Positions 6,346-63,706 of a stretch of DNA of 64,000 bases are shown piece after piece. Position 1 is the stretch's first letter; each line of letters opens with the position of its first letter. The notes under the pieces are model-generated. The model was not told where the DNA came from. It saw only the letters and a list, made by a program, of their open reading frames with translations, and did no database searches. Origin of the DNA: Obrimoposthia wandeli (taxonomy: Eukaryota); NCBI GenBank assembly GCA_977020255.1, contig CDROCS010000376.1, positions 372,001 through 436,000 of the forward strand, read 5' to 3'. Made by a program: the position numbers and the translations under genes.

Positions 6346-6363
6346 AATTCATTTACTGATGCA

Positions 6364-9060
6364 ATCTACCGGTCGAGAAATCGTACGCAGAAACCGATAG
6401 ATTTACTTTTACTAGAGAGTGATGATCACTATAATTATGTCGCAGTTCCTAAATAAAATACGTTACTTAATTATAGAAACAGAGGGATGGCAACTCGTAT
6501 TCAATATACTTGTGTCCTAATTGTTTACGTGGGTTTCAACGGATGGATGCATGCGTTCGCTCCTCTGTAGATCAAATATAGAACACACAAATCTGTATCA
6601 GATGCTTGTAGATAAGAAATGCAACTTCACAAAGCAAATTTGAAGCAGTACTGTCACTGTATGGAATCTTCCATCAGAATCACTTACATATAGTGGATTG
6701 TATTTTGTTTTCTCCTATTTCAGCGGATATAAACGCCTACCAACATGGGTACTCCGTTTTCACTGGAGAGTTTTGTGATATCGAGTTTTTGAATAAGCTA
6801 GATTGGCTTGTTAAAGACATCGTATCTCCGTGGTATCGTAACCATGCCGTGGAAGTTATGTGCCCACGTACATTGGAGCAGATAGTGAGCTTTATCTCAG
6901 CTACTGTTTATTACTTGTGTAAGAAGCGAGTCCCAAACAAGGTTCACAATCATGAACACATGATCAGCGAGTATATCAGTGCTACACACTGGAAATGTAA
7001 GTTATATAGAAGGTTGAGTCATAGTATCTAGTGATTTTTTCATAACCTGAAACGCTATGATATGCATCACATCATGAAGTATGCATTGAGTCAGTTTTGG
7101 CATTGGGATTGCATTATGATTCCATAATTCAGTGAGAAAATGTATGGCTTTGATGAATCATATCAATTGGATCTCTCTTAGATTCATCGACTCACTGCAA
7201 TTTATCAACAGTAGCTTGGAGAAACTAATCGCAAGTATTTTGGAAACACTGATCACATCAAGCATCCATCCTCCTCAATTGAAGAAAGGTAAGGGGATCT
7301 TCCTCTACAATATGGTCACGTCTGAGACTGCTGTCCATGCCAGCACAAGTCTGCCACCGATATAGAACGAAACAACCAAGCCTGATATCTACATGCTCGC
7401 CGAACAAGCTTGGATAGAAACTGTGTATCAGTCTTTTTTAACAACATGCTTGTCTACTTCAAGCTCGACGTGTTTTTGTTAGCAGACATATTCACTGCTT
7501 TCCAGACAAGGGCTATCAGTGACAACGGGCTAGATTCGCTCAACCTCTTCAGTATTCCTGGTGTGAAATATTTGATTTTCAATATTTTCTTTAATAGTAA
7601 TTAATAATCTCTACAGTAATTATTTAAATTCATTATTGAAAGTAAGTAATATTTAATCTTTAGTTATATTTTCTCTAATTATTTCTCCCCTATAAAAAAC
7701 TTACTTTCACTTCGGACTTCAAGTTGTTGCTATGGTCCGAGGGAACTACCGTATCTGGCGCTACTCTCGTCAAGGTGGAGTTGGTATAGAATCTCAAAAT
7801 GTACCAGCTCTTTTGTGAGGGAATCCGCGATTAGATTTCGTTTTTGAATTCAGTAAACGGCCTTGAACTTTTGTATATAGACGATAACAATCTGTACGGA
7901 TGAATTATGTGCAAATATTTGCCAGTAGGAGGTTTTATGTGAGTAATAGACCGATTAGGATTAGAAACTATTATTTCTGAGCTCTCATATGTAGAATGTA
8001 TTTGTAGTAACTTTGCTTATTTGTTGGAATTGGATTTATTCATTTCAAATCACCTACATGATAAGTTGGATGGTCTGCCAATAGCTTCTAGAAAGGAATG
8101 CTCCATAGGTAGTAAAATAACTAAACTACTATTAACTCACTATCCAAAAATACGTAATGTTGTAAACGCTCGTTTGTAGCAAATGTCCCTAAGACGCAAG
8201 GTGCAAGGTTAAATTTTTTGTATCAAACCATTAAGTTTGCACTAAATAATTTTTTTCTGATTACATAGAGGCAAACAAAATTTAACGGGCACAGGCCACT
8301 AACGTTTTTATAAAGGATTACTATAAATTGAAAGTAAATTATCTTTTCGGTAAGTTAATTGAAAATTTAATGAAGAGAATGAACTTACGTATTTGTAACA
8401 CTTTTCAAAAGCAATTCTCAATCCAGACAGACTATAGAATTTGACAGACTTTATTGCTGTGTTATTAAATAAGAATACTGTCGTTTTGGATCGTCCAAGC
8501 TAGATTGGGCAAGCAGTTTTAGACTTAAGTAAATTACGAATGTATAAATTACAGTACATGTAGCTTGAGAAATATATGACACACTTTAACTGCAAAATGA
8601 AGGTTATTGCCTGTGACTCTGACAGCTTTTTCTTAATGTGTATAAGTGTAAATATTATCGGTAAAGATTAGTGATGAGGGTTTAGATACTTCTCAATTTC
8701 CCACATCTCATCTACATTTTACTATGGTTAACATTGCTATTGGGAAAGTAAAAGACGAAAAAAAGAAGGTTGTACGATATTATAGGGGATATTTTACGCC
8801 CAAAATATTATAGTTTAAAAGCTACTGCCGAAGAAGTGCAGATTAGAGCGAAGTGAATTAGTTTGAAAGCTTGTGACTTATCATATGCTTATTACTTAGT
8901 TATATAGTAGAATGGAGTAAGTAAAAAAATGTGCATTAAGAACGCGTTACTTCACTTAATCATAAATCTTCTATATTCAGTTAAGTAGAATAGCGTTGAG
9001 CAGTCATGATGATAAACGAAAATGGACTGAGGAAAATCAGTCTGGTGTCTTCGGTCATTT
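6364..9060 (+). pseudogene. Protein-primed DNA polymerase B remnant (5'-truncated)
   Basis: IYRSRNRTQKPIDLLLLESDDHYNYVAVP, LRFIDSLQF, YFKLDVFLLADIF, IDDNNLYG, LKVNYLFGK, CDSDSF and ALSSHDDKRKW are colinear with the pPolB at 29339-32888. Confidence 0.9.
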
Positions 9061-9216
9061 TCTCCATTCAAATGTTTATTTTATCGTATATGAGAGATTT
9101 TTAGAAATTTTATTTTATGGGACTCTTATGTTTTTTATTTTATCCTTTTTATGTTCCCTAACACTTGCACACACACACACACATATATTTTCATTTATAA
9201 TTAAATGTATTTAACT

Positions 9217-9351
9217 AGATGTGACATGGAGATAAAATTTATATTTCATTTAATGTGAATGTCAGGGCTATCCTATAGTGACAAAAAGATGTGACATGGA
9301 GATAAAATTTATATTTCATTTAATGTGAAGGTCAGGGCTATCCTATAGTGA
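9217..9351. repeat. 70-bp tandem duplication (2 copies)
   Basis: agatgtgacatggagataaaattt...gggctatcctatagtga starts at 9217 and again at 9287. Confidence 0.9.
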
Positions 9352-9539
9352 TGACTACATGTCAATAGAACACTCAGAGCAAAATATATGTACGTTTGAA
9401 AAGAGTTTAATAGAAGAAAGACAATGAGTCATCGATGATTCGTGGTCTTTGTTCTCCGATAACAAAGGCTGCTTTTCAGGACAAAGACCATGAGACATTG
9501 TGAACTTTGTCCTGAAAGACACATATCCCCTTACTTATA
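9322..9539. repeat. Right arm of a ~210-bp inverted repeat pair (partner 2544-2757)
   Basis: See the left arm. This copy has a ~28-nt deletion between two atg(g/a)gtcat motifs relative to the left arm. Confidence 0.8.
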
Positions 9540-13154: not shown

Positions 13155-13442
13155 NNNNNNNNNNNNNNNNNNNNNNNNNNNNNNNNNNNNNNNNNNNNNN
13201 NNNNNNNNNNNNNNNNNNNNNNNNNNNNNNNNNNNNNNNNNNNNNNNNNNNNNNNNNNNNNNNNNNNNNNNNNNNNNNNNNNNNNNNNNNNNNNNNNNNN
13301 NNNNNNNNNNNNNNNNNNNNNNNNNNNNNNNNNNNNNNNNNNNNNNNNNNNNNNNNNNNNNNNNNNNNNNNNNNNNNNNNNNNNNNNNNNNNNNNNNNNN
13401 NNNNNNNNNNNNNNNNNNNNNNNNNNNNNNNNNNNNNNNNNN
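13155..13442. other. Assembly gap (288 N)
   Basis: Run of n. Confidence 1.
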
Positions 13443-23501: not shown

Positions 23502-23595
23502 AGTAGGTGGATGTGTCCGGTCTAATCCACACCCCCTCCCCCTACTGTCCTTTAAAACCGTGCATGTGTGTGGAGTGAAATTTCGTGTAGGTGTG
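23502..23595 (+). repeat. Left terminal inverted repeat
   Basis: agtaggtggatgtgtccggtctaatccacaccccctccccc..gtcctttaaaaccgtgcatgtgtgtggagtgaaatttcgtgtaggtgtg. Its reverse complement is found at 40731-40807 and 54755-54848. Confidence 0.95.
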
Positions 23596-23879
23596 TAGAA
23601 AAATTTTCTACCCCCCCTCCCAAACACTCAAAAAAATAATTAACTCCATATAACACCCTGTAAATTTAAAAATCTCATAATGCTCCCAAAATTTTGATTA
23701 AGGTCCTGAGAGGCCAAAAAATTTTCCTTATAAAAATTTATATCCATACATATATACAAGGTCATAAAAAAAAATTTCTTTATAAGAATTTATAGGGTCG
23801 CAAAAATTTTTAAATAATCAACTACATAAATTCGAAATAATTTTCATTTTTATTTGATGAGTCATCAAATTAGTCATCA

Positions 23880-28446: not shown

Positions 28447-31400
28447 ATGCCTATGGTAAGAATTTATTTTTCTTATTTCCTTATTAATATTTATTATTTC
28501 AGATTACGTGTAACCTATTCCCTGCGTATTGCGCTGCTTCGGCTCCGCATGGAGGAGAGTCCTGCATGGAGACAATGTCTGCATACTACCGGACAAAGTC
28601 TCAAGGTGTTCTGTTCTTCGTCTGCCCTTTCTGCAGAACAATGGAGGAGAAGGAGTTTCGAGAATTCTTCTGTGAACATCGAGCTCACCTATCGTGTTTC
28701 ACGGCCAACAACAAGAAGAGGGATATCGTCCAATTGGTGCGCGATTCGCAGGCCGCTCCAGCTCCACCTCCAATTCCAGTGGCAGTCAGTCTACCAGTTT
28801 ATGGTCCTGTCATTGGTCCTTCTCTCCCGGCTCCTGATTCTGCTGCTGCCCCATCCACTCAAATGTCTAACAATGAGTGGATGAACGACATCTCCGAGGA
28901 AGATTTTGAGGAGTTGGCACCAGCAACCCAATTCTCAAACAATGACTGGATGCGAAATATCACCCAGTCAGAATTCGAGATGGAGCAGCCTCAGTGGAGC
29001 GATAACTCATGGTTGGAGACCATCGATGAATCCAATTTCGTCGAGTCAACGGACGACAGCTGGATGGATTCCATCAATGAAGAGGACTTCATTCCAGCTC
29101 AACTTGGATTGTCATCATTAGGTATTTTTTTATTTTTTTTTGTAAATAGTAATTATATAATTTATTTTTTAATATATATATCTTATTTTTATTTTTTTAT
29201 TCAGGAAATACCGTTCTACAATCGTCATCTGCTACAACAGATATGCCTCCAATGTCGCGAGTGCCTACATTGATGTTAGGACGCCTTAGAGGTAATAATT
29301 TTTAAAAATATATTTATTTTTTAATATATTTATTTCAGCAGCACTAACCTCTAAAACAGCCGCTTCTTCATCGGCAAGGTCAGCGGTCCCTTCAACATCA
29401 GCTACAGTTGCCTCAACATCGGCAGCATCACCAATAGCAGCACCTTCAACCTCAGCTGAGTTTGTGTCAACTGCTAATATAAATAGTTGTCTTCCCGTTA
29501 AATTAGGGGGAGGTTTGTCAGCGACAAACGGAAGAAAGAGGCGAGGCCAATTTCTTAATAAGGTCCCACCCAAAAAACGTAGAGAAAACGGTGCTACTAT
29601 AGAGTATCACCTAAATAATAAATATGTTATAGTTAAGGTGCCATTAGGAAATGAAATTTTATTAAACGTAGGTGTAGATTCAAATATTGAAAATCTTTTA
29701 AAATCAGAAGTGACTAAATTAGGACAGGCTAAGGTTCAATTTTGCGCAACAGTGCAGTTTAAAAATGTCAATGAGGAAACTAAAACTTGGGTAATTTCAC
29801 ATAAAGCAACTGTTTTTTATGATAATTTTGTAACTGAAATTGGAAGAAACCTGGATGAAAAAATTGCTAATTATAGCGAGTTAAGTAGTGGATGGACTCT
29901 AGTTAGAATTCACGATGTTAGCTTTGTTCTAACAAAGTTCACTGACATGATATATCTTTCGGGGAGTTCATACATTCCTTCACCTAGATCTCTTCAACTT
30001 TCACGTTCCATTGTTAACGTACAAAACAGTGATAACCTTTGCTTTCTGTATAGCGTGTTGGCCATCCTCAAAAGGGATGTAATTACTGAGCATAGAGAGC
30101 GTGTCAGTAAATATACCCCTTTTTTAAATGAATTGCAGTATCATGGAATAGATTTTCCTGTTAAATTAACTGCGATATCAAGATTTGAACATCTTAATAA
30201 CTTGAGTATTAATGTATTCAAATATAATACTGATATCTCAGTTAATGTAACAGATGAAGAAAATTTTAAAAATCCTTTAGTAGATGTAATTTATAGGAGT
30301 AAAAATGAGGGGACTCAGGTCAACTTAATTTTTCTCGAACATAATAAAAAATTCCATTATGCTGCAATTCCCAATTTAGATCGTCTTCTAAATTTAGATA
30401 ATGGAGCCTTACCGGTTAGGATAAGGTGTAAGTGGTGTCATAGATGTTTGCATGGGTTCCGATCCGAGCTCTCTTACAGCAAACATCTGACATTATGTTC
30501 ACTGAATCCTGATGACAATACGCTATATAGCATGCCTAAGGATAAGGATTTAAAATTCAGGGATTGGGCAAAATGCATACCCGTGGAATTCAGGGTGTAT
30601 GCAGATTTTGAGTCAATTTTAGCATTGCACGACCAGTATGAGAGTATTCACCTACCGGCTTCGGCAGGACTACTATTCTTAGGCCCCAATATTACCCAGT
30701 ATCATAAATTTTCCGGTCCAAATTGTATTTTAGATTTTATGTTAAAATTAGAGGAATTAGGAACAACAATTGTCAAACCGTGGTATGATCTCAATGCTCA
30801 TCAAGCAATGATCATGACAGGCATAGACTGGGTTAATTTTAATTCTTGTAGATTATGTAATTTGTGTGGAACCCAGTCTAAGTTAGTCAGAGATTACGAT
30901 CATGTTATGGGGCGATACTTGGGAGCGGCGTGCAACCTTTGTAACCTTGGCCGTTGTCTCCCTAAAAAACCACGCATTCCCATCGTGTTTCATAACCTCA
31001 AAGGATATGATTTGCATCATATACTTAAATACGCGTTGGGTACATTAAGCTCTTGGGAAATTTCATGTATGCCTCAAACTTCAGAGAAATATTTATCTTT
31101 AACTGCATATACTGAATTCTGCAGTTTAAGATTCATAGATTCTCTGCAGTTTTTGAGCGGGTCTTTAAAAAATTTAACGGCATCTTTAAATGCATGGCCA
31201 ATTACACAGTCAGTGTTCCCAACTTCGGTTAACGATAAGGGGATTTTTCCGTATCAATTTGCGAAAATTTTCGCAGATTTAGAAAATACAACTGAAATCC
31301 CACCCATAACTGAATTTGAGGGTGTAAGTCTTCAAGACTATAATGAGGCCCGTACATTTTGGGTGAATAATTGTCGAAATCGTTTAGAATATATGCTTTA

Positions 31401-32888
31401 TTATATGAAGTTAGACATTTATCTTTTAGCTTATGTTTTTGAGTCCTTTCGTGTAAAGTCTTTAGCAGAAGATGGGCTAGATCCCATGCATTTCTTTAGT
31501 TTACCTGGTCTTTCATGGGCAACAGCAATAAAAACTCTTAAAATTAATATTGAGTTACTGCAAGATCCCGCGATGTATCAAATGTATGATTATGGTATAC
31601 GCGGTGGAATGACTTTTGTCAACAATCATCATGTTGTCAAAAGTCAATCCACGGAGATTCTGAACATCGACATTAATAATTTGTATGGGTGGGCGCTTAC
31701 TCAACTTCTTCCTCATGCCAACTTTAAGTGGGTTTATGATGAGGAAGAGTTGAATAAGTTGATGACAGATTTGGCTACTGTTGATACAGTTTCATCAGAT
31801 ATCGGCTATTTGGTTGAGGTTGACTTAACAATCCTTCCAATGTGCATGATAAATTAGATGATCTTCCAGTAGCGCCTGTTCATCAATACCCACCTAATTC
31901 AAAGGTTAAGAAATTATTGTTAACCCATGAAGACAAGTTGAATTATGTTGTGCATTGGCGGCTTCTTCAATTCTACTTAAAGTTGGGAGCGAAAGTTACT
32001 CGAATTCATCGTGCTAAAAGCTTCAGTCAAAACTTTGTGTTTAAAGACTATATTGAGAAGAATTCAAGAAAACGTAATTTGGCCACTAGCAAATTCGATC
32101 GAGATTTTTATAAGTTAAAAAGTAATAGTCTCTTTGGAAAAACTGTAGAGGACTTGCGGAAACGTATTTGTCTACGGTTTTGCAATGATGAGCGTAAACT
32201 AAAAACATATACTAGCAAGTACAACTTTAAGCGTAGTTTTACAATTGCAGATGACTTGGTAGCAGTGTTATTAGGAAAACAGAGTATTTGTCTCGATCGA
32301 CCGAGTTATATAGGTCAAACGGTTTTAGACATTTCTAAACTCAGAATGTATGAGCTTCAATACATAGAATTGGAGAAATACCGACAAGAATTTAATTGTG
32401 AGATTAAAATCGCAGCTGGGGACACTGACTCTTTCTTTTTAGAATGTAGGAATGTTAGTTTAAATAATCAATTATTACCAGCAATGTTTAGGGACAAATT
32501 ACTAGATACCCATAAATATCCCGCTAACCATCCTCTACACTCTATGAGTTTAAAGGACATTATCGGGAAATTTAAGGATGAAAGCGAGGGACAGGTTTCG
32601 TATGATGATTGTATTTTCCTACGCCCTAAATGCTACAGTTTACATGCATCTAATAATACATGGTCAATGAGAGCAAAGGGTGTGGGAAGAAACAATCTTA
32701 CACATGAGGCCTACCGGAAAGTTTATGATACTGGGTGTATTGAAAGCGTTGAGCAAACTAGATTTATTTCAAGAGCCCATCAACTGTATTCCCATAAATC
32801 AACCAAAATCGCTTTGAGTAGTAATGACGACAAGCGCTTTTGGGTAGAAAAGAACGCTAGCCTGGCTTATGGACACTTCAGAATTTAA
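28447..32888 (+). CDS. polB: Protein-primed DNA polymerase B with spliced N-terminal extension; one -1 frameshift near 31836
   Basis: Exonuclease motifs YADFES, FHNLKGYD, YMKLDIY. Polymerase motifs DINNLYG, KLKSNSLFGK, AGDTDS, LRPKCY, KG. Predicted exons 28447-28455, 28503-29121, 29205-29291, 29339-32888. The join of ORFs 29464-31857 and 31842-32888 is repaired by one extra C in atcc[c]ttcc (LTIPSNVHDKLDDLP). Confidence 0.95.
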
Positions 32889-33544: not shown

Positions 33545-34776
33545 CTATAATATGACAGTTCTGTTTTTATTGATTTGTATTTCCGAATCAAATACTCCGT
33601 AAATAAGCACCGTAGTAGGATTTGTTAAAGCTGCATTGAACTTAATTTCTAGTCGTAAATTTCCATCCTTTGGTAGTTGGCATTGGTTTATATCAAAGTC
33701 TGGTGCCAAAACAAATGTGAAGAACGGGCAGCTGTTTTTAAATTCAGTGAAAGAAATACCATTGTTTATATTTTTATCTAGTTGACCCAAATTCCGAATA
33801 ATAGATTGGGTATAAGCCAAAGCATAAGCGTTACCTTCGAAATCTGTTTTATATGTTTCACGATAATCAGTATTTCTTGAAAGTGTCACTGAACCAACAT
33901 TGAAGATTGTCAAATTGAGTTGCATCTGTCGTATAATTTCCTAGAAACTTTGCAGTTTTTTGGAAAGAAATTAAAATGAATTTCGGTAATCTTACACCAC
34001 CAAAAATTTGATCCTTATTAAAAGCTTGTGTACCCGTACCTAAAAAATAAGATATAAGTTTAGTTTCTCTAATAGGATAACAAGCATTGTTTTTTTCCAT
34101 TCCTATATTATGTGCCATTAAAACTGATTGCTCGGTTTTAACTCTTCGAACATACAATTTTGCATCCAAAATATCAAGTCTAGGTTTTAGAATGTCCGTG
34201 CTTGTCAAAGAAAAATTCCATTTATTACGTTTCAAACGAAGATGTACATTAACACCGGGAATTAAATATTTCGGTTGTTCAAAGAAATTCAATCTCAAAG
34301 ACCCACACATTTCGTAAGCTTTAGAACCTGCAATCCATTCTTTGCGAGTTGCATCAGTTTTATCATAACCAATGGTTGCCAAATTAGTATTTTGAGTATC
34401 AGTACTATAATTCAAAAGACTTTCAATCAAAGCTTTATGAGCATAGGAAGAAATTTCCACCTTCAATTTTGACATTATTAAGAGTAACAATGGCATCATT
34501 AAATAAAGAATTAAATAGATAATTTACAGGTGTTACATCGGCATTTTCATCTAAATTAGTACCATCCCGATTTAATACTTTTATTTGAACATAAAGCAAA
34601 GTATCATTCAAATCTAAATACTCGCTATTGGAACCATTAATATTAAATTCTAAATCGGTTAAAATGGTTCCTTAAACTGAGTTAACTAGGAATATTTCTT
34701 CAAAGGAAGCATTATCTACAACTACTTGTGGAAGCGGTTTATCAAAAATACATAAATCAGTTTTGGCGCAACTCAT
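33545..34776 (-). pseudogene. Major capsid protein (double jelly-roll, hexon-like), disrupted
   Basis: MSCAKTDLCIFDKPLPQ..LEFNINGSNSEYLDLNDT..VTPVNYLFNSLF..YAHKALIESLLNY..FFEQPKYLIPGV..LAPD..GNLRLEIKF..VLIYGVFDSEIQINKNRTV is the typical Polinton MCP. One TAA (~34672) and frameshifts near 34455 and 33905. Confidence 0.9.
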
Positions 34777-35085
34777 TTTGCAAATATTGTTCCTTCAACT
34801 TTCTTACGTTTGTTTATATTAAGTTTTAGCTTCTTTTACTTTTAAATCCACTACCTCCTTGGCTTTTATTTGATTTACGTTTTCTAATCAAATTAGCAAC
34901 TTCAGGTAAAACATTATCAAGTTCATCAATTTTGATATAAATCGCCCGAGTCTCTTTAAAAGAGGAAAGGCAAATCTACCTAATGTTCTAAGCCAGCCAG
35001 ATCCGTATTGTTTACCAACAAAATATGGTAATTCTCCACCTTGTTGGCTTTGACTATAAGCTTCAATTATTGCTGGATTCGCCAT
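34775..35085 (-). pseudogene. Small Gly-rich amphipathic virion (core/membrane-lytic-like) protein, frameshifted
   Basis: YSQSQQGGELPYFVGKQYGSGWLRTLGRFAFPLLKRLG matches the conserved Polinton Y..Q.GG..F.G...G.G..L..L.R.A.P.LK peptide. The basic C-terminus KRKKVEGTIFAK* is in another frame. Confidence 0.7.
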
Positions 35086-36103
35086 TTTGTTTTCTTAAAT
35101 GTATTGTTAAACTTGTCTTGGCCCCGTACGTGAAATCTATTAGTTGTCCGGAATCATCTCTAATATTTACTTCAATATTGTTTATAGAAAAGAGAGAAAC
35201 TGGAAGATACATTGGTTGATCTATACACATACCGACAGTGTCTCCATCTCTAGTTTCATTTTTAGATATCCATATTGTTCTCAAAAGTGGAACTCGCTGT
35301 CCTCCTACAAGCGTTGGTTCTATTAAATTAGTATAAATATATAAATTATTAACAGCATTTAAATGTTTTGCCTTATTTTTAGCTTTTATGGTTTTTATTG
35401 TATGGATTTCAAAGGTATTTCTGTTTAAACCAAGGTTTTTAGCGAGTTTATCATCAAATGAAACTCGTTTTATATTGCTCTTTACTGTAAACGTTAATTT
35501 ACCATTTAATGTTTCACATTTATCCAAATATTCACTACATTCCTTCTGTATTAATTTACAGAAATTCACTTCACTATCTATTTTATAATCTTTTGAAAAC
35601 GTTTTCAGTTCCACTACAGTCTTTGGTCTCGTTTCAAGTAACAACACTTTTGCTACTCTACCAGGAACATTTCTAACTGAATTAGATGAGATAATATCCC
35701 GTTTATTACGAGCTACTGTTTGTTCACTATCAAAACTGAATTGAAGAGCTTCTTTTTTAGATTCAAAATTAATTTTAATAACTTGAAGAAATTTTAATCG
35801 ATTTTTAAATCTGACTTTGTTATTTTCAAATATTACTTTCACTTCTTTATCTATACAATTGTAATAGAATTGTCCTTTACTATCAAACCCGATAACAACT
35901 TCAGTTGTTTTTTCATGATCAACTTCTTTTGTAAACGAAATATGTGAGTTTTTTTGATAGTAATTGGAGAATAATAAAAAGAAAATTCTGTTAAAGCCGC
36001 TTCCCATAGAATTTTCCCAATCGATAATAAAGCTACTAGCGTCATTATCTGGTTGAGTCTTCGGACATCCGTTACTTGGTAAAACCATATACATAGAATT
36101 CAT
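35063..36103 (-). CDS. Minor capsid protein (penton-like)
   Basis: N-terminal YMVLPSN..P.N..SF and C-terminal LYIYTNLIEP..VG..VPLLR..MYLPV..IEVNIRDDSG..F..G..LTIHL. The conserved WEAALTEFSF lies in another frame, indicating a compensated double frameshift. Confidence 0.85.
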   Translation of the reverse strand: MNSMYMVLPSNGCPKTQPDNDASSFIIDWENSMGSGFNRIFFLLFSNYYQKNSHISFTKEVDHEKTTEVVIGFDSKGQFYYNCIDKEVKVIFENNKVRFKNRLKFLQVIKINFESKKEALQFSFDSEQTVARNKRDIISSNSVRNVPGRVAKVLLLETRPKTVVELKTFSKDYKIDSEVNFCKLIQKECSEYLDKCETLNGKLTFTVKSNIKRVSFDDKLAKNLGLNRNTFEIHTIKTIKAKNKAKHLNAVNNLYIYTNLIEPTLVGGQRVPLLRTIWISKNETRDGDTVGMCIDQPMYLPVSLFSINNIEVNIRDDSGQLIDFTYGAKTSLTIHLRKQNGESSNN

Positions 36104-37128
36104 ATTATATTAGATGCTGATATCCAAGTTGGGTCTGAATAACCATGCCATTTAACAAAGTATTGTTTATGTTTACCTGTACCCTTAGATTTTAATATTT
36201 TTTGAATACGGTAAACGCTAGGTTTATTTGATATTACTTGTAGTTCTTGCTCGTAAAATTTACCGTGAACGATATTATTGTCAGCATCTTTAATAGTATA
36301 CATTATTGGATTACTCTTTTGATCAATTTTACTTATACAAAATATTTCATCGCTCCAATTCTGATCAAAGTTTTTAATAAATGGAGTAGAGCTAATTTTC
36401 GAAATTCGAACATATTCGTTTTTCTTATATTTAGATTTTTTAATTTTAGATTTTTTATTCCTGTTCATCCAAATGTCCATAGAGTTTTTATTAGTAACAT
36501 CAACAGGTCTCATTCCCTTGAGACCTCTATGTTCAGAGTGATTATATGCATGTATTATTTTAGGTAAAACTTGGATCCATTTTTTATTTCCTTCTTTTGT
36601 GAAATACTTTTTTATTCGATCTCTTAGAGTACGATTAAATCTTTCTACTACTGCTGCTTTGTATTGGGAAAACACAGAGTAATGATTTATATTATTTTGT
36701 TTAAATAATGATTGAACTTGCTTATTATAAAATTCTTTTCCTAAATCAGTTTGCACATTTTGTGGAATGTCCTCTTTTAATATTTCTTTAATGGCTTCAA
36801 GCATAGCTATTGAAGACTTTGCTTTAACTGGAATTGCACGAGCAAACCTGCTAAATACATCAATACATGTTAAAATATATCGATATCCCTTATTAATGGA
36901 AGAATATGGGATCATCTCCATCAAATCCATTTGCCATAAATTATTAGGACCGCTGGTTTTGTAAGCTCTAGTTGGAAACCTTCTTCTCATCGGCTTGTTC
37001 AGGCTGTAGGCTAACTGGTCGCTCAGCCATTTCTGCGTTTTCTTGTAATTTTGTTTTGTTCTTTTTGCTAATTTTGAAACTCCTGTGTAGCCAATTGGAT
37101 CTTTTGGATTGAACCATATCTTCTCCAT
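36100..37128 (-). CDS. int: RVE-family integrase with C-terminal chromodomain, intact (342 aa)
   Basis: WQMDL, QTDLGKEF and AAVVERFNRTL (D-D-E). C-terminal YRIQKILKSK..QYFVKWHGY..TWI chromodomain. ATG at 37128 (MEKIWF) is supported by the homologue at 5530. Confidence 0.95.
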   Translation of the reverse strand: MEKIWFNPKDPIGYTGVSKLAKRTKQNYKKTQKWLSDQLAYSLNKPMRRRFPTRAYKTSGPNNLWQMDLMEMIPYSSINKGYRYILTCIDVFSRFARAIPVKAKSSIAMLEAIKEILKEDIPQNVQTDLGKEFYNKQVQSLFKQNNINHYSVFSQYKAAVVERFNRTLRDRIKKYFTKEGNKKWIQVLPKIIHAYNHSEHRGLKGMRPVDVTNKNSMDIWMNRNKKSKIKKSKYKKNEYVRISKISSTPFIKNFDQNWSDEIFCISKIDQKSNPIMYTIKDADNNIVHGKFYEQELQVISNKPSVYRIQKILKSKGTGKHKQYFVKWHGYSDPTWISASNII

Positions 37129-37214
37129 TACAACAATTTGAATAGAAAGAAAATTTAAGTTTAGGTAAAGAAGGGCTAGCACCCATATCTTTAGCTGGTT
37201 TTAGAAATAATTGT

Positions 37215-37723: not shown

Positions 37724-38370
37724 TTATTTTTTATAATTGTTCTCTATTTGTTTATAAACAGTTACTCCCTTAGATTTAAATATGTCTGTTAAAACACGTA
37801 AATCATCTGGGCAAGCTTCTGTAAAGTCAATAAATATATACCCATGTGCTTGTTTAGCAGCATCGTGGAATGAATCAACTAGAAAGTTCTTATTTTGAGG
37901 AAATGCCTGTCTGGCCACAAAATCAACAACTGTTTGATCTCTAGGATTTTTAAATAAAACTAAGTAATGTACATTAAGATTTCTTGTTCTATGATGACCT
38001 CCTGGTGAAACAGATTTTGAGTGATAAATATAACTGTTACTTCACGATGTCTTGCAATCTTTGTAAATAAATTATTAAAGTCCGATTCCTTGTTAGCCTC
38101 CTCATACAAATCATCAATTATTATTACATCTTCTTTTTTCAATCTTTCACACCAATTTGCATCAAATCCTTCAATAAATTTTATACCCTTCAACTTGCAA
38201 ACTTCTGTTTTGGTTAACCCGCTTTCCCCTCCTCCACCATGATGCCAATAAATATTTTTGAAACTAGATTTGAAAAGAGATTCATTTTGCAACAATTTAC
38301 AGACGAAATTTGTCTTTCCACTTCCACTTGGGCCAACTATTTGAAATACAGCATTATTATTTAGCTCCAT
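37724..38370 (-). CDS. FtsK/A32-like genome packaging ATPase; one frameshift near 37997
   Basis: GPSGSGKT (Walker A), IIIDDL (Walker B), ARH..IFITQNLF. Continues in another frame as GGHHRTRNLNVHYLVLFKNPRD..HGYIFIDF..LRVLTDIF. Confidence 0.92.
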
Positions 38371-38407
38371 TGCATATACTCTTTCATTTTTAATATTGTT
38401 TATATTA

Positions 38408-38680
38408 TCATAGAAGTTTCCTTATTGAAATGTACAATGTTAGAGCTATTGTAGATGAAATACAAAAATTAATTAATGAATATTTGACTATAATTTTATT
38501 TATTTGTGTACGAATTCTAAATTCTCGAATAACGTGTGATCTAACCAATATTTCAATGTTATCTCTTGTTATATCATTATTTTTTAATTCTGATAAAATT
38601 TCTTTACCCCTTATTTTTCCAGAAAATATTTCATCGGCAAGCCGATCCACTTCATTGTCTCTATTTATAGTATTATTCAT
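38408..38680 (-). CDS. Hypothetical 90-aa protein with C-terminal hydrophobic segment
   Basis: Intact ORF between the ATPase and TBP-like genes in the same orientation. Ends YSLINFCISSTIALTLYISIRKLL. Confidence 0.5.
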   Translation of the reverse strand: MNNTINRDNEVDRLADEIFSGKIRGKEILSELKNNDITRDNIEILVRSHVIREFRIRTQINKIIVKYSLINFCISSTIALTLYISIRKLL

Positions 38681-38708
38681 TCAAAACAATAAGTTTAAAC
38701 GGGTTTGT

Positions 38709-39208
38709 TTATAGAAAAGATAACAAGATGTAATAAGATATATTTTCTAAAATCAAATCAACAATGTCTGGATAATAAAAATTTTTCAATCCCAATATCA
38801 TAACTTTACCACTGGAAAATATATTTACACATAGCGGTTTAAACTTCAAATAACTGAGAGCAGGAAATATTTCTGGTTCAAACATGCATTCTTCTTTCAT
38901 TTTCTCTGCAGTTTTAAAAAGATTTATCTGTTTTCCGAGATTAGCCGAAATCGTGATTGATTGTATTGCAGTGATTTGAATTCCAAATGGTAAATTGAAC
39001 CCAAGCATTGGTATTTTGCATCCCATAACACGACAATTTCCTAAAGAATTCAATATGAAAATAAAATAAAAAACTAACCTGTAGGAAAAATAACAACTGT
39101 GAAATTGTCAAACCTTTCTACATATTGTCTCGGCTTCCATTCATTGAATGGTAAGTACGAAACATCATCTTCTGTTCTACCTTTATAATTTATATTTACG
39201 AGTTTCAT
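38709..39208 (-). CDS. TATA-binding-protein (TBP)-like protein, 153 aa, 2 exons
   Basis: Exons 39208-39079 and 39040-38709, 38-nt GT-AG phase-1 intron. Repeat 1: MKLVNINYKG..TVVIFPTGNCRVMGCK. Repeat 2: IQSITISANLGKQINL..FEPEIFPAL..PLCVNIFSSGKVMILGLK. Compare TBP QNIV..LIFxSGKxVxTGAK and YEPELFPGL..LIFVSGKVVLTGAK. Confidence 0.85.
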
Positions 39209-39487
39209 TAGACTAAAATTGTATTCTGTAAAATCTTCTTTATATATGTCTGAACCTGCTATTTTATTGCACGTTTCTTGTAATTATCTTGCAAACCTAT
39301 TATAATTGGATGATATATTTCTTCCAATCAATTTTGATTTTTAATATAGATTTAGTCCAATCAAATTCAATGCTTTAGTTATATTAACCAATGAGATTCA
39401 TGTCTTTGTTAGAAATTAGTATAAAAGAATGCGCCATTGGAGGACAAATCACAGTAAATGCATTCATATCAAAGACAATTATCAACG
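39209..39487. promoter_or_regulatory. Divergent promoter between the TBP-like gene and paralogue pair
   Basis: CCAAT at 39324, 39357 and 39388 (33/31-bp spacing), ATTGG at 39305 and 39436. TATA on - at 39239-39246 and TATAAAAG on + at 39420. Conserved in the inverted copy at 57090-57320. Confidence 0.65.
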
Positions 39488-39934
39488 ATGGACGATAGCC
39501 AACGGGTATTAAGCGATGACGAAGAAATGTTTGAAGAATCGGATAAGGATATGTATGAAGAAGTGAAACAATATTTCAAATACAAAGTCAGATTCTTGAA
39601 GAAGGCTCAACTGATTGCTTTAGTAAATCCTGTGACAATTGAAAGAAGAAAGTTCAGCTACTATATATCAGGTATTCAAAAACCTGATTTTCAAAATCTT
39701 AAACAGAAAATAGAAAAGGCAGTTCCAAATTTTACTTTCAATAAGAACGAATTTTATATCTGAGGAGCCGATGAAGCATTTCTAGATGACTATGGAAGAT
39801 ATGTTGATATTGATGCGTTTCCGAAAAAGAAGCAATGGACTCTAACAATTCGACTTTATGGTTACAAGAAAGATGAAATGGGGACAAAGTTGCCTATGTG
39901 GAAAATTGAACGTGCTCATATTTCTATGTTTTAA
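39488..39934 (+). pseudogene. Accessory gene D1 (paralogue of 40068-40472); one in-frame TGA at 39761
   Basis: The frame continues past the TGA: GADEAFLDDYG..WTLTIRLYGY..PMWKIERAHISMF*. Aligns along its length with the next ORF. Confidence 0.75.
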
Positions 39935-40472: not shown

Positions 40473-40730
40473 TAAATATTTTGAAAAATAATTTTGTCTC
40501 GTATTTTGTTTTTGCTCCTCTAAATTATATAGATCTGACCGATTTCTCTCCTCTAAATTATAAAACTGACCTAGATATTTAACATGTAGTAATTTATTAA
40601 TCTAAAATCCGGGGTCAATATGGATTCTCGTGGTCTTCTCTAACCACTTTTGAGATTCATGGTAAAAGTTTAACAAATATGGTGGGGGGTTACCCCTTCC
40701 TTCCCCCTTTGGGTGGAATGGAGACATACA

Positions 40731-40807
40731 TACACGAAATTTCACTCCACACACCTACACGGTTTTAAAGGACAGGGGGGGGAGGGGGGTTGTGGATTAG
40801 ACCGGAT
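40731..40807 (-). repeat. Right terminal inverted repeat (13 nt missing just inside the terminus)
   Basis: tacacgaaatttcactccacacac..ggttttaaaggacag..gtggattagaccgga-t. Lacks cacatccacctac relative to the left TIR. Confidence 0.9.
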
Positions 40808-41779
40808 GATTATGAATATATTAAACATCAACAAATGTATTATTTAAATATCTATGAACATTTTTAAAGTACATGCTCATGTATTTATGATTTTAGTGAA
40901 AGTTTATTAGATCGCATTAGATTCCAGTGCATCTAAATGCTGAATATTATTCTTTTATTTAATTCTTAATAATTGCTGTTAATTTTGCAACATTTATTAA
41001 AAAGAAACCACCATGTGTTTGTTATGGTAGAAATTTGGCCCAAATTATTGATTAATTTTCAACATAAAAATTGTAGAATTTATAATTATATATACATTTG
41101 AAGGAAAATAGAGAAAAATCCGAAATCAAAGAAGTTACTTTTCAGAGATAAATTTACGTTTAATATTCGTTTCTTTTCAAATTTAAATCGTAATTCCAAA
41201 CCAATGAATATTTTTTCTATTTTCTTAGTTTATTTATCGATTTTTTCGATATTAATATTTTTATTTGTTCTTACCTCAGAAAACTAAAAAATTAGAAATA
41301 AAAAAAAATATATATATATTGATTAAATTTATTTATACAGTAGGTCCGAAAATTCTGACAAATATAAAGAGAAAGAAAATTTTAAAAATTATTTTCTGCG
41401 ATTAATCAATACTTGAATTTTAAAATTCCACATTTAATGAAGCTCCATTGGCAGCCGATCATTACCAGAATTGAATTCAAGATCCTACTTATTATCAAAA
41501 AGAAGTATTCTCCCACTAAATCCCAAATATTTATATGATCTTCTCGACTCTAGAAAATAACTGCAGATTGGCCTATAAATTCTCAAATAACAAACAGAGT
41601 GATGAAAGATTTGAAATCGATACTCAGAATCTTTACAAAAATTTACCGATGAATGCTTTATTATTCAGATATTAATATGAAGAATTATTGAAAATCGTAA
41701 GCACCTTTGAGTAATAAATCATAGCTTTGTAAGATATTAGCGCTGCATTAAATATATCATTGTTATTGTTTGAAATGTA

Positions 41780-53777: not shown

Positions 53778-53968
53778 NNNNNNNNNNNNNNNNNNNNNNN
53801 NNNNNNNNNNNNNNNNNNNNNNNNNNNNNNNNNNNNNNNNNNNNNNNNNNNNNNNNNNNNNNNNNNNNNNNNNNNNNNNNNNNNNNNNNNNNNNNNNNNN
53901 NNNNNNNNNNNNNNNNNNNNNNNNNNNNNNNNNNNNNNNNNNNNNNNNNNNNNNNNNNNNNNNNNNNN
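53778..53968. other. Assembly gap (191 N)
   Basis: Run of n. Confidence 1.
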
Positions 53969-54690: not shown

Positions 54691-54848
54691 GGGGGGTACC
54701 CCCCCCCCTTGTCCTTTAAAACCGTGCATGTGTGTGGAGTGAAATTTCACTCCACACACCTACACGAAATTTTACTCCACACACATGCACGGTTTTAAAG
54801 GACAAGGGGGGAGGGGGGTGTGGATTAGACCGGACACATCCACCTACT
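54691..54848 (-). repeat. Third copy of the Polinton TIR with an internal fold-back duplication
   Basis: 54755-54848 is the reverse complement of the left TIR including its terminus. 54703-54747 and 54767-54811 are 45-bp inverted arms with one mismatch. Confidence 0.92.
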
Positions 54849-56149
54849 GATGTCCTACTTTGAAATCAATCCATAAGCTGAGCTGAGTTGCCAACAACTA
54901 GATAAGTTGAAAAGCTCAATAATAGTGAAATGTCGTAGATCAGTAGGTAGAAGCAATTCAATGAATACTATATTTTATTTGCATGATAAGGTTCGAGTCC
55001 ACGACAGCTGCAACTTATCAAAAGTCAGGAGAGTTGGGGTTTATTCCCACGATTAGTCACCGATCTAATTATACCTCATTTTCCTAATGAAATCAGCCGT
55101 AAGAGGCAAGAATTTTTTGAATGCAATTTTTTGTCGAGGATGCAATGAAAATTGCAGTATAGGTTCCTTTCTAAATCTTCAAATCTCTTCCAAAATAAAA
55201 TTTTGAAAACTTTCTGAGCAATGGAGCAAGCACAAATAAGATTATTTTCGTCATTTATGTGATAATGAGGATTTATAGATTACATTTGTTTTTGGTTTTT
55301 GGTTCGTTTTAAGAAATATGAACAAAAACCTTTCAAACATGGCTATTTGTAGGATTCCAGAAAAACGTAAAATAATTTCTGATATTTATAAAATATGCCT
55401 GTGAATGAAAAGGTTTAGTACGGTAATTTATTTAAAGGGCTCATGTTATAGTCAGCACTGTGATTGCGTATCGGCGTTATTAGACGATAACAACGTTAGA
55501 AAATCTATTAAAAAAACTTAACAAATGTCTGAAAATGTGATAATAGGTTAGAAAAAATAATCCCATTTAATTTTCTAAATAAACAATTAATTCAAAAATT
55601 ACACAAGAAATGTGTAAGATAGTAAAATGATAGAACTGTCTCATTAAATAAGAAACATAATCAAAATATCGGAAAAATACACAAACGTTCATAAATTTGA
55701 AAAATATGTCAGACATCATTAGTAATTTGTCATTCTCAATAAAACAAAATTTAATATATAATGATCAGCAGAAATTCATCGTAAATACACTTCTAGTGCA
55801 TCTCATAAAATATTAATAAGAAAGCTTAAAATATTCTTAACAGTATATTTATAAATATGTAACATCAAATTTCAGTATGTTTTAATAAATTAAGAATATC
55901 AGTATTATTTACTATTCAGAAAATATCAAAAAGAATATTGGAAAATAAATTTATTAGATATTAGCGCCATATTAAATATGTTTATTTAAAACAATAACCA
56001 ACACGACACAGTACGAAGAATCATCAAGGGCAACCTTATGTTCTTTAAAACAGAGCATATGTGTGTCTTATCTTGAAAATTTTGTCTATTTTTCTTGATC
56101 ATATGTAAAATATCTTATCAAATGTATTTCAATCGATTTTTTACAAAGG

Positions 56150-58110
56150 TTACAGGTCAGACATATATTTTTGATGAAAAAATAACTAAACATAAGACAA
56201 AAATGAATTTCAATTAAATCAACACAAATACTGAGTATGAAAAAAACTATATTAGCTTCATTCAAATTCCAAAGAAGTTGTATTTTTTTAAAATCAGAAG
56301 TAACATTAAACCGTATTAAAATATTCTACAGTTCTCCTTATAAATTTATACCAATATCATTTATAAAAAAAAAACTAGAATCCATTTCAAACTTAAAAGA
56401 ATTTTCTTCATATACATAATCAGGTGTGAATAATTCTAAAATATTTTTGAGCCGATCAATATCAGATTTTGTTAAATTTTCATTGAATATTCATGTTCGA
56501 CTTTTGATTTTTATACAAAATTCATAACACGTATAATTTTATGTGATTTTAATATTTTCCAAAAGTTTCTGGGTAATAAAAATTTAATATATTTCAGAAG
56601 AGAATCTACATTAAAAAACTGATAAAATAGAAATCTTTATAAATGAATATTATTAAGCAAAATACAAATGTAAATATTATGAAATGTAAAGAAATAAAAC
56701 CTGCTTACAATTTAAAGTCAATATATGCAGAAATATACAATTAAAAGAAACAGTAAAATTAAATATAAAGTAACACAGAAGGAAAGAAAAGAAAGAAATA
56801 GTCAAAACATAAGCAAGTTCAATTTCATCCATCCTGTAACCAAAAAGTTGAATTTGCACAGTCCATTGCTTCTATATATAATATAAAAATAAAATTGATA
56901 TACACGCTTTCTTATATCAACTGTCATCAGATTTACCAAAGCAGTTAATTGAGCCTTCTTCAAGAACCTGACTTTGTATTGAAAATATTGTTTCATTTCT
57001 GAATACGTATTCTTATCCGAATCTTCAAACATTTCTAAATCTTCATCATCGCTCAGTATTGGCTATCTTCCATCATTGATAAATATATTTGGTATGAATG
57101 CAATTATACTGATTCGTTCTCCAATGACATCTTCTTTAAAACTAATTTGTAACAAATACACAAAACTATTTGATTAATATAACTAAATTATTGAGTTTGA
57201 TTGGACCAAAACGATTTGTATTTGACCATCCCATTATAAAAGGTTTGCAACATATTTACAAGAAATTAGCAATATAATGAGAAATTCATACTTATTTATT
57301 ACAGAAACAGTTTTATTCTGATAAAACTCATGAATATAAATCATGAAGAAATAATAGAAGAAAATATTTTATATTTCAGAAGATTATTTGTGAAACAGGT
57401 TGATGATTATACAGTTTCTTTTAACACATAGTGCCGCAATAGTTGGAGCAGTAGCAGTATGTGTTGGTTTGCATACATCCTATTCATCAGTGAACAACCG
57501 CCACTCGTCTTCATATAACTCGGTACAGACTGAGTCACTTCTGGCGGGTGGTTCTCAGCTTGTAGGTAGAGCAGGAGTAGATGGGAAGAAGTCAAATCAT
57601 CATCCTCTTGAGGGTCTTCATTTGTTGACGGCACAAACTTGATAGAATCGTCAGGTTGGTCAGCTTTGTGGTTGCTGCAGTTGAGACAGTGGAAGCATAT
57701 TCCATTGGCATTGACATTTTATCGAGGCCTCGTATAATTCTCTTCCTCGCTGGCAGTGCTGATGTTGATGCTCACTAATTCTGTTGAACTTGAAGGGTGG
57801 GAAACTTGAGAATAGTTCTGTTGGGAAGTACATCCTTCCCAATTTGTTATCGACTCCTGACTAATAAAGTCTCTGTACCCCTTCTTTTTCTGTTGCTGGT
57901 GATGATCGTGTTGCTGATGCTCCTGCTGCTGCTGCTGCTGCTACTTGAACCTCTACTGGTTTTGACATGACGATAGGTTCACAAAGTTTCATTGAGTTTT
58001 GAATAAGTAATTCGATGTACTGTGACGATGTTCAAGTCGGTTGCTACACAGTAGCATCTGATAAGACCGAATGAAAAGAAAATTAATAATTATTCTTCGT
58101 CCAATATAAA
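56150..58110 (-). mobile_element. Inverted, internally deleted Polinton remnant 4 (gene A 5' part joined to the TBP 5' end, promoter and D1/D2)
   Basis: 56237-57080 (-) is homologous to D2/D1 (MFEDSDKNTYSEMKQYFQYKVRFLKKAQL). 57090-57365 matches the divergent promoter and TBP start (ataaaactcatgaatataaat vs atgaaactcgtaaatataaat). 57560-58050 (-) encodes SQYIELLIQNS, ISQESITNWEGCT and EASIKC..LPLSQ, homologous to gene A. Confidence 0.85.
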
Positions 58111-61100: not shown

Positions 61101-62351
61101 CTTCGACTTTAAATTTTAGAGAAAAAGGTTTTTTTCAGCTTCAGGTCGACCTTGTAATGATGGTCGCTAACATAAATTCTTTAAAAGTTATCCTGACTAG
61201 TAAATTGCAAAGTTCTCTGAAAATGAATCTTTAGAGCCCTGCTAAAGAGATCGGTGCTAAATTTCCATTGATAGATATTGATAGCAAGAAATGAAAATAT
61301 AATAATTAAATAAATTGTTAAACTAAAGACCTTTACTTAGATTTTGATTCCCTTAATATGTTACTTGCTGCAGTTACCGAAAAATGTTAAAGTAAAATAT
61401 CGGTGACGTTGATAAACTGCAGAAATTGAGATATTTTAAAAAAATGACTTCCGACAAATAAATTTCACATTCTTGGCTTAACAATATATCTAAACAAATT
61501 TAATATTAGCTTAATACGATTTAATACGAATATCTAGTATGAAATTTTCAGTCACCAGCTAGCGATGTGGGAGGAATTTGCTAAAAAATTAGTTCAAACC
61601 TCTGCATCAAACTAACTTTCTAAAAGTTTCATAAATCTAATGTAATGTTGACGTCGCCACCACCGCTTGTCAAGCTATCGGCGCAGAGTTCTGTGAACAT
61701 GGCCCAATTTTTATTTATAATAACACATATTACTCTATCTTCATGACCACTTAAATGGTTTTGGTGATATAAGTGGGTAACCTGATGCAGGGATGTGATC
61801 TAATCTGACATCAGATATGCCCTCCAATTTATAGCCAGCTAAGTATTTCAAATGGATACATAACTGAGATGAAATTATTCTTTATTCTCATTATGAAATG
61901 ACTTGGTAAAAACTATTTAAACATATTTTCTACTTTTATTTTTCTCCAAAATACTTTACAAAACTTTTTTTTGACTAAGAAATTTATTTCAAATTTGTAT
62001 GAGACTATATGGAAGAGCAGAAAAATTTTCTTTTCCATTTATTTAGGCCATCAACTTCATAATATAGAATAAAAATTTGAATTGAAAGAGAAAAAAAAGG
62101 TGTATTTCTAAATTAAACGTTTTTCAAATGGATACATAATTGAAATGAAATTATTCTATGAACCTTCTTAATATCAAATGACTTGGAATTCTATGAAAAG
62201 ATATAAAAATAATTTAGCTTACAATTATTTTTTCTAAAACGAAAGTCTCGAAAATTTCGATGACACATTTTTATTTTGACATTTCCTCGTATTTTTCAAA
62301 ATTTTTTAAATTAAAGATTTTATTAAAAATGAAGTTTGTGTTTATCAACAG

Positions 62352-62858
62352 GCCACGTGCGTGACTATCGAATGCCCGACGGTGACCGGGCAGCGGCGAG
62401 GGGAACCCTGGCGGACAACTCATATGACGGGGTGCTGCTGGCAAATGGCGGTCTGCAGAACGGGCTCGGCAAGCTCACAGACAGAGACGTGCTGCGCCAG
62501 GGTCCACCCTCATTCGTGGGCTGGAGTGCTGCATCCAGACTTCACCCCACGGCGGCAGTGGTCTCTATAGAACTCAGGCTGTCGAGCCCGCGACTAGTGC
62601 ACTCGGTGAGGGTGTGCTCGCGTGCGGGTTCAGTGCCGGGGTCAATAGAGGCAACTGTATTGTTCCAGGACAGCGGTGGGGGCGTTGGGCACACAGTCGT
62701 GTGGCGGGAAACAGGTGGTGGAGGCAGGCCGACAGGCGGAGATGAGTCCGTGTGGATCCGTATGGAAATAGGCAGAGGCGCTGTCGGGGATGTGGTAAAA
62801 CTTCAGCTGCGCTTCCGGTCTAGTTGGATCCTGTTGAGGGAGGTAGAGATTGACAGTG
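62352..62858 (+). CDS. DDR: DDR-like receptor, DS-like domain exon
   Basis: caacag acceptor, GTGAGT donor, phase 1/1, compatible with the exon ending at 10177. (S)HVRDYRMPDG..LADNSYDG..GLGKLTD..FVGW..VKLQLRFRSSWILLREVEIDS matches the DDR DS-like domain (YxMPxG, YDG, GLGxLxD, WILxSEV). Confidence 0.85.
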
Positions 62859-63706
62859 GTGAGTTGACTTCTCCGTGGGATTTCTTTCATTGCACCTTCT
62901 CAACAGATACTTACAGATTAATTCAAATTTAACTTTTAAAGATTTTGCCAGCATGCATGCTTCTTAAATTTTCGCATATATTGCTTAAATCGAGTAACAA
63001 ATTAACACAATAGGATATTTAATTCCACGTTTATACATATGGTATACAATTTTATTTAGATTTCGATTCAAATGACTATGAAATCCCATTTTCTGCAATC
63101 AAATAGTTATATGAATGAAATCAAGACAATTGAAGATGAATGAAAGTATAAGTGAATTTAAAAATAATATGAGTATTAAAAAATAGTGTCATACATGTCG
63201 GTGAAAGATCATTTTTTGTGTTCTGGATTAAAACATCACAATAAATTGTTTAATTAAGAGTCATAAAAATATACAATATCCATATCAAAAAGATTTATCA
63301 AAAAATAATATATTTTACTACTGAGATAACTGTTGGGAATATAAATATATAGTTTAAATTAATTTATTGAAGAGCCCACATTTGAACTGCGTTTATTTAA
63401 GACAGCGATGGCCAGTTTTTATCTTCTGCTTCACGGTGGAAAAATTGCCTGCGAAGTAGGAGACAAACACAGAAAGAACTATTGCATCCTCTATCGATTT
63501 TCTGCCTGCCTAATTTTAAGTGCACCACTTAAACACACCTGTTTTTTTACTTCCTCTATCTGTTTATTGGTGCCGATTTACATGTGTGTGTCTGCAAATT
63601 TATGTTATGTCACTTACGACAGAAATATTAATATAAAATTTTTAGCATAGAGAGATTTGATTTAATTTCTTATACCAATTATTAAATTGCTACAAAAAAA
63701 AGAATA

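Follow-up and report, generated by a model that had tools for sequence, protein, structure and literature searches.

[quoted passage not shown] The gene (38709-39208) extends from an ATG at 39208 to a stop codon at 38709 and consists of two coding segments in different reading frames. Segment 1 (39079-39208, 130 nt, ending in ACAG) encodes a strand-only first half-repeat up to the Gly of the sequence IFPTG, and segment 2 (38709-39040, 332 nt including the stop codon) encodes the end of this half-repeat and the whole second TBP repeat. The segments are separated by a T-rich putative intron of 38 nt (39041-39078, GT..AG) that falls in phase 1 within the Gly codon. Joining the segments according to this splice model yields 153 codons and a product of 153 amino acids, here called mini-TBP.

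The mini-TBP gene lies inside an element of ~17 kb that is identified by its gene content and ends as a Polinton. Candidate terminal inverted repeats, found as inverted-repeat pairs, are located at 23502-23599 and 40724-40788, the latter being 91% complementary to 23532-23596 over 65 nt. They span ~17.3 kb, within the 15-20 kb used as the size criterion for Polintons, and the TBP gene sits 1.5 kb inside the right repeat. The element encodes a protein-primed family B DNA polymerase (pPolB; 29464-32888, forward strand; PF03175 with 56.5 and 30.7 bits on two ORFs), an integrase with an rve core and a chromodomain (36100-37182, reverse strand; PF00665, 50 bits) and a packaging ATPase of the Pox_A32 type (37748-38370, reverse strand; PF04665, 30 bits), so that the pPolB, rve integrase and A32/FtsK-type ATPase of Polintons are all present. 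Two further reverse-strand genes encode possible capsid components. A homologue of a 408-aa protein (33545-34776) is, judged solely by its size and position, a candidate major capsid protein, and a conserved 346-aa element protein (35063-36103) is a weak candidate for the penton, or minor capsid, protein. The model of the 346-aa protein has a pLDDT of 67 and its Foldseek matches to minor capsid proteins are weak (TM ~0.2); because its conserved termini are poorly modelled, it can be assigned to the penton only weakly. Neither the 346-aa nor the 408-aa protein gave a useful match when its profile was searched against PDB sequences. For the adenovirus-type protease, the only record is a faint Peptidase_C5 match on a neighbouring gene in one relative (L002).

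Compared with intact relatives, the element in the window carries four frameshifts distributed over three genes: two disrupt the gene of the 408-aa protein, and the ATPase and pPolB genes have one each. No interruption is seen in the integrase, the 346-aa protein or the genes designated g104 and o27542. These frameshifts reflect either decay of this copy or errors of assembly in AT-rich sequence, and they make the activity of this particular element doubtful. The mini-TBP gene itself looks intact at the level of its coding sequence. On the other side of the TBP gene, ORF 39458-39922 (forward strand) is a homologue of g116, the gene found just upstream of TBP in the related locus L012; it is inverted here and diverges from TBP, its g116 match runs beyond the ORF stop codon, and a canonical TATA box of its own lies at 39420-39427. 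A weak Endonuclease_7 (PF02945) signal in the N-terminal part of pPolB (29464-31857, residues 460-495) recurs, faint or weak, in the relatives L085, L086 and L087.

Partial copies of the same element family occur in the window at 2543-9539 and 54751-57400, and pieces resembling the ATPase and the integrase lie at ~4.8-6.1 kb. The inverted remnant at 54.75-57.4 kb has a terminal repeat too (23502-23599 versus 54751-54848, 93%). No other TBP-like coding sequence was found in the 64-kb window. An ORF at 62336-62932 (forward strand) matches the discoidin-domain-receptor DS-like domain (PF21114, E 9e-10) and is probably a host exon, which points to an animal as the host, and runs of N occupy 13155-13442 and 53778-53968.

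The association between the TBP gene and the element extends to related loci. Comparison of the ORFs of the window with 83 loci by tblastn reveals a conserved order of TBP, ATPase, integrase, a ~340-aa protein and a ~408-aa protein, with pPolB on the other strand, and this order is kept even where pPolB is only ~30% identical. A same-strand ATPase gene is found within 3 kb in 19 of the 21 TBP-selected loci with at least 2.5 kb of downstream sequence, with a median gap of 450 nt, and an integrase gene in all 11 TBP-selected loci with at least 5 kb. Conversely, each of four long integrase-selected contigs, all from one sample, has a PF00352 gene upstream of the ATPase. By this conservation of sequence and position, mini-TBP belongs to the core genes of a single lineage of adintovirus-like Polinton/Maverick elements. 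The sequence-only reading of the locus had described the gene as Polinton-encoded, which is borne out by the pPolB, integrase and ATPase genes around it and by the recurrence of the TBP-ATPase-integrase order in relatives. It had also regarded the gene as a stable part of the family because its 5' end and promoter persist in a remnant. Such a remnant does exist: an inverted copy at 57061-57369 (forward strand, 71% identity) holds the upstream intergenic region together with approximately the first 49 nt of the TBP coding sequence. The synteny across dozens of metagenomic contigs is much stronger evidence for the same conclusion.

The splice model is likewise corroborated by relatives. In the protein alignment A1, the two pieces of the window product meet at columns 74/75 with neither gap nor overlap, and the residues at the junction are identical to those of the relative P0003. 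A family HMM built without the window sequence scores the joined product as a single domain at 185.7 bits, versus 42.0 and 129.9 bits for the segments alone. Segment 1 aligns to the N-termini of the relatives, with 42 bits (E 1e-14) against an HMM of these N-termini (positions 1-45). The junction is continuous, with no interruption, in 36 related loci that were fetched, and ~60 metagenomic relatives are intronless single ORFs that read through it. One related locus, L032 (JGI contig Ga0209893_1000171), is interrupted at this Gly codon, likewise in phase 1, by a GT..AG stretch of 40 nt whose sequence is unrelated to that in the window; its joined product scores 182.7 bits with the family HMM, and the genes adjoining its TBP gene are intact ORFs. 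The two products are 49% identical, which indicates that the position of the intron has outlasted much sequence change. Because a diverged relative has an interruption at exactly the same position and phase, the 38-nt stretch behaves as an intron, and from this comparison of coding sequences it is a genuine short intron, present in at least two elements. The removal of 38 nt to give 153 amino acids, as originally proposed, is therefore retained.

The window and L032 elements are not mutual nearest relatives, as judged by the raw identity of integrase, ATPase and TBP, so the intron either has an ancient origin followed by many losses or arose independently in the two elements at one site. Within the window element, whose frameshifts elsewhere are not intron-like, no gene but TBP has an intron. 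Family proteins that start at a Met just past the junction were considered as further intron-bearing genes and rejected: P0007 is cut by the end of its contig, and P0015 reads through the junction and has no in-frame start codon.

The 38-nt stretch might instead be a disabling insertion, which would make the gene in the window a dead copy decaying together with its element. The frameshifts in the ATPase, 408-aa protein and pPolB genes are in keeping with such decay, as are the 36 relatives that have no interruption and the replacement of one family-conserved Arg by Ser in the window copy. This explanation is nevertheless improbable, since the stretch starts with GT and ends with AG, its removal restores the family junction exactly, L032 shares the codon and phase of the interruption with a different sequence amid intact neighbouring genes, and only one of the 26 columns conserved in the family is altered in the window copy.

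Several comparisons were used to assign the protein. Segment 2 alone matches the Pfam TBP family PF00352 (E 6e-12, 45.7 bits, cut-off 22.9), segment 1 alone has no Pfam match, and PF00352 is matched by 37 of 38 family members. When the profile of alignment A1 is searched against PDB sequences, TBPs are the only significant matches (best E 1e-22), by way of the C-terminal repeat only. Comparison of profiles with hhalign extends the similarity to both halves: mini-TBP positions 29-157 align to positions 46-182 of 24 canonical TBPs (alignment A3) with a probability of 99.5. For repeat 1, this alignment pairs the stirrup hairpin and the F-x-[ST]-G-K strand with their canonical counterparts, and helix 2 falls in a deletion. 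The PDB scores, which run from 83 to 60 bits across both domains, do not discriminate between an archaeal, eukaryotic or viral TBP as the origin of the family.

The structure was modelled with AlphaFold2 from alignment A1 for a natural relative, P0003, whose junction residues are those of the window copy. The model has a pLDDT of 96.9 and a pTM of 0.87. Residues 1-80 form four strands and no helix, and residues 66-154 form a complete TBP repeat of a strand, a helix, four strands and a long helix. A Foldseek search of the PDB with this model places TBPs in all of the top 44 matches, over ~175-183 columns and with query TM values of 0.60-0.73; the first match thereafter has an E value of 0.05. 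From the model, the Foldseek matches, the profile search and the hhalign alignment, mini-TBP is a TBP saddle with its first half stripped of helical cover. The absence of two complete strand-plus-helix repeats sets it apart from TBP proper, as its repeat 1 consists of strands only, although the sheet still aligns with the whole TBP core. As sequence and model describe it, mini-TBP is a minimal, asymmetric TBP derivative that keeps the DNA-facing beta-sheet saddle and a complete repeat 2. In cellular TBP, the two helices of each repeat form the upper surface to which regulators bind. The exposed upper face of the helix-less half-sheet in the model suggests that a partner or a dimer covers it.

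Conservation was evaluated in 59 full-length representatives of the family, among which 26 columns are at least 80% conserved. The one of these in which the window copy departs from the family is position 106, two residues past F-P-A-L, where it has Ser and 52 of the 59 have Arg. Cellular TBP kinks DNA by means of phenylalanines and touches TFIIB through its E-P-E stirrup. Three of the four kinking phenylalanines are conserved in mini-TBP, one in repeat 1 (58/59) and both in repeat 2 (59/59 each). At the first Phe position of repeat 1 there is no conserved aromatic residue, and Pro-x-Gln is found there. The E-P-E stirrup is preserved at the sequence level (E in 57, P in 55 and E in 57 of 59), with all three residues present in the window copy. 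Thus, F41, F102, F118 and E98-P99-E100 are conserved across the family. Repeat 1 also retains its Asn (58/59), whereas strand 1 of repeat 2 has Ser in 57 of 59 where the canonical TBPs of A3 have Asn. Strand 1 carries two conserved Asn and a conserved Tyr, and an R-x-M-G strand is conserved as well. Because one kinking Phe is absent and Ser replaces the minor-groove Asn of repeat 2, binding of the TATA type is not guaranteed.

These results largely uphold what had been read from the sequence. The claim of TBP homology is backed by Pfam, the PDB profile search, hhalign and AlphaFold2 with Foldseek, all of which give TBP and nothing else, and the proposed structural check against TBP came out in its favour, with the P0003 model forming a TBP saddle over its whole length. 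The residue assignments proved to be family-wide features, namely both Phe and the acidic stirrup of repeat 2, the Asn and single Phe of repeat 1, and the Ser that replaces Asn in repeat 2. The description of the product as having both TBP repeats needs revision for one half: repeat 2 is complete, and repeat 1 is a strand-only half without helices. Repeat 1 had been called shortened; it is indeed reduced, but the change goes beyond shortening, as both helices are missing in the P0003 model.

Relatives of the protein were collected with segment 2 as the query. A word-indexed search yielded six proteins of 119-190 aa, and an exhaustive search yielded 697 matches, including 71 at E <=1e-10 that are mostly ~145-175 aa long. 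The match region in the exhaustive search covers approximately residues 45-145 of the relatives, with canonical two-repeat TBPs lower in the list. The resulting family comprises ~59 full-length representative clusters and 146 loci in JGI metagenomes, and the sources of the ten clusters examined are metagenomes only, some of these clusters being already named TBP by the JGI pipeline. Pairwise identity within the family is ~32-55%, and identity to canonical TBPs does not exceed ~40%. A scan of IMG/VR with the family profile gave one distant match only, and the family is essentially absent from that collection. Among the related loci, L090 (854-6447) has two TRAF/MATH-domain genes beside mini-TBP, and L089 (1446-1868) has a RING-finger gene between TBP and the ATPase.

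The genes of the element fall into two promoter classes. In the window, a canonical TATA box (TATATAAAG, 39238-39246, reverse strand) lies 38 nt upstream of the TBP start codon, and the motif TATAAACA lies upstream of both downstream genes on the same strand: at 38706-38713, 33 nt before the next gene (ORF 38408-38680), and at 38397-38404, 34 nt before the ATPase start codon. The TBP stop codon is inside the first of these TATAAACA motifs, so the end of the TBP gene and the promoter of the next gene overlap. The window contains 20 matches to TATAAACA, versus ~8.4 expected, and 11 of them fall within the element, where almost all share the strand of the adjacent genes.

The same division is observed in the relatives. 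Upstream regions from 43 related loci contain ATAAAC in 162 of 329 cases (63 of 951 background windows) and TATAAACA in 85 of 329 (25 of 951). Per-gene counts were made on non-redundant upstream regions, on the sense strand and with ATAAAC 12-75 nt before the ATG. The motif precedes the ATPase in 26/29 regions, g104 in 13/13, g340 in 9/12, g408 in 13/14 and o27542 in 11/13, with antisense controls of 0-1 for each of these genes; for TBP the count is 3/67. When the position is restricted to approximately -65 to -25, 66 of the 81 regions of these five genes have the motif, whereas TBP genes have it in 3 of 67 (Fisher 4e-23). The distribution is reversed for the canonical TATA pattern, searched in its textbook form, with 30 of 67 TBP regions (antisense 5/67) versus 9 of 81 regions of the other five genes (Fisher 4e-06). 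The starts of ATAAAC peak at -45 to -35; the preceding base is T (71%) or C (26%), and the following base is A in 92%. At 17 of 23 loci the motif also precedes the integrase gene, at a greater distance, and the pPolB upstream regions, available for two loci only, have neither motif. The TBP gene therefore differs in promoter type from the rest of the element, an observation that is new here. ATAAACA resembles a forkhead-type site, and the motif could equally be a site for a host factor.

A second conserved motif of 14 nt, TCATGTCTTTGTTA, is located at 39398-39411 (forward strand), between the TBP gene and the divergent ORF 39458, and points away from TBP. The canonical TATA box that follows it (39420-39427) is 38 nt upstream of the ATG of this ORF. 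This motif (13-14 nt) is exactly conserved in 7 of 83 loci (L006, L007, L008, L010, L021, L028 and L032), with other sites in the window at 41011-41024 (forward strand) and 57150-57160 (reverse strand), and its core resembles an HMG/SOX-type site.

Polintons/Mavericks are thought to be wholly dependent on host transcription, and the arrangement described here suggests that the element steers its own. The reading that we prefer, at a probability of about 0.55, is that mini-TBP acts as an element-specific basal transcription factor encoded by a core gene of a Polinton lineage. The host machinery would transcribe the mini-TBP gene from its canonical TATA box, and mini-TBP would then bind the ATAAACA core-promoter motif of the element, ~35-45 nt before the start codons of the ATPase, the integrase and the candidate capsid genes. 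At this motif it would recruit TFIIB and Pol II, and it could escape host factors that act on the helical surface that its repeat 1 has lost. In this scheme, DNA binding, recruitment of TFIIB and the link between mini-TBP and ATAAACA are steps that we infer only. A more specific version is that the lineage runs a two-tier programme, in which host TBP fires the mini-TBP TATA box and mini-TBP retargets Pol II to a private ATAAACA motif beyond the reach of host regulators. This version is put forward tentatively, and the odds are against it in its full form.

The original reading had left the choice between redirection of Pol II to viral (late) promoters and a decoy, and the two promoter classes favour redirection. 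As a decoy or shut-off factor, mini-TBP would occupy host TATA boxes or titrate TFIIB without forming a productive complex, thereby damping host or rival transcription. A small, single-domain protein that conserves the TFIIB-contact stirrup and is missing the helical surface for other partners would suit that task. Such a role is unlikely, however, because it leaves unexplained the strictly positioned motif that the other genes of the element have in common and the TBP gene lacks, and because the conservation of nearly all DNA-face residues in a family of ~30-55% identity fits sequence-specific binding.

The location of the gene directly before the packaging ATPase gene, in the same orientation and at a median gap of 450 nt, would also be compatible with an architectural DNA-bender recruited from the TBP fold and acting outside transcription, in packaging, in the recognition of replication ends or as an integration cofactor. 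TBP-like folds do occur in proteins that are not transcription factors, and two family members have a faint Pfam match to DUF3378. Against this role, which we regard as quite unlikely, the similarity is specifically to true TBPs, including the E-P-E-[LI]-F-P stirrup, and goes beyond the fold alone, and the promoter class of the TBP gene differs from that of the adjoining morphogenesis genes. The idea of a recent host TBP fragment, captured or retro-copied by chance, has nothing beyond the shared domain to recommend it and can be set aside with near certainty, given the low identity within the family (~32-55%), the identity of at most ~40% to canonical TBPs, a helix-less architecture common to ~59 diverged clusters and a position in the element that is conserved even where pPolB is ~30% identical.

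The combination of a conserved element-encoded TBP derivative, a private, strictly positioned motif on the other genes and a canonical TATA box on the TBP gene makes the switching-on of Polinton genes directly testable by expression and structural data. A TBP gene in Polintons is not wholly unreported. Figure 5 of Starrett et al. 2021 (PMC8502044) has a 'TBP' label for an accessory gene in MELD viruses with adintovirus-like PolB, and TRAF is also among the accessory labels in the figure legends of that paper. The legend in the preprint of the same work lists TRAF beside TBP, and the relative L090 has its TRAF/MATH genes next to mini-TBP. The two cases are thus alike in having a TBP-like gene in Polinton-related elements, as compared by label only; in its figures and legends, PMC8502044 gives the label without an analysis of sequence, architecture, promoter or distribution. 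A full-text literature search returned no analysis of a Polinton TBP, and the figure label in PMC8502044 is the sole prior mention that it found. In the literature searched, no description was found of the architecture, of how widespread and syntenic the family is, of the intron common to two elements or of the promoter dichotomy.

Among viral proteins, mini-TBP can be compared with two groups. The TBP-like proteins of giant viruses (Nucleocytoviricota) are likewise TBP folds encoded by virus-type genomes, and the best BFVD matches are to Heterosigma akashiwo virus 01, Terrestrivirus and asfarvirus B263R-type proteins (E 2e-8 to 1e-4). They differ in being longer (190-500 aa) and only 12-20% identical to mini-TBP, and they serve virus-encoded RNA polymerases. 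To our knowledge, Polintons encode no RNA polymerase of the giant-virus kind, so mini-TBP would have to use host Pol II. The herpesvirus late-gene TBP mimics (BcRF1/U58/ORF75-type) are TBP-fold proteins that read a variant TATA element on the late promoters of a nuclear DNA virus, and their likeness to mini-TBP is an analogy of function only. They are large and multidomain, their structural match is weak (TM 0.37-0.49, ranks 30-36), and no sequence relationship to these mimics, including the BcRF1/UL87/ORF24 family, was detected. If the two-tier programme is true, it would parallel, in a small genome, the late-gene TBP mimic of herpesviruses, and mini-TBP would be the smallest known working TBP.

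The closest comparison is with cellular TBP of eukaryotes and archaea (PF00352). The predicted saddle of mini-TBP aligns with it over the whole length, repeat 2 is complete, and repeat 1 keeps the strand 1 Asn, the stirrup hairpin and the F-x-[ST]-G-K strand. It differs in its length of ~150 aa, compared with ~180 aa for the cellular core, in the loss of both helices of repeat 1, in the missing one of four phenylalanines, in the Ser that takes the place of Asn in repeat 2 and in being encoded by a mobile, virus-like element. Mini-TBP is also of interest for TBP biology, as a natural 'half-stripped' saddle that shows which parts of TBP are dispensable while the DNA face and the TFIIB stirrup stay strongly constrained.
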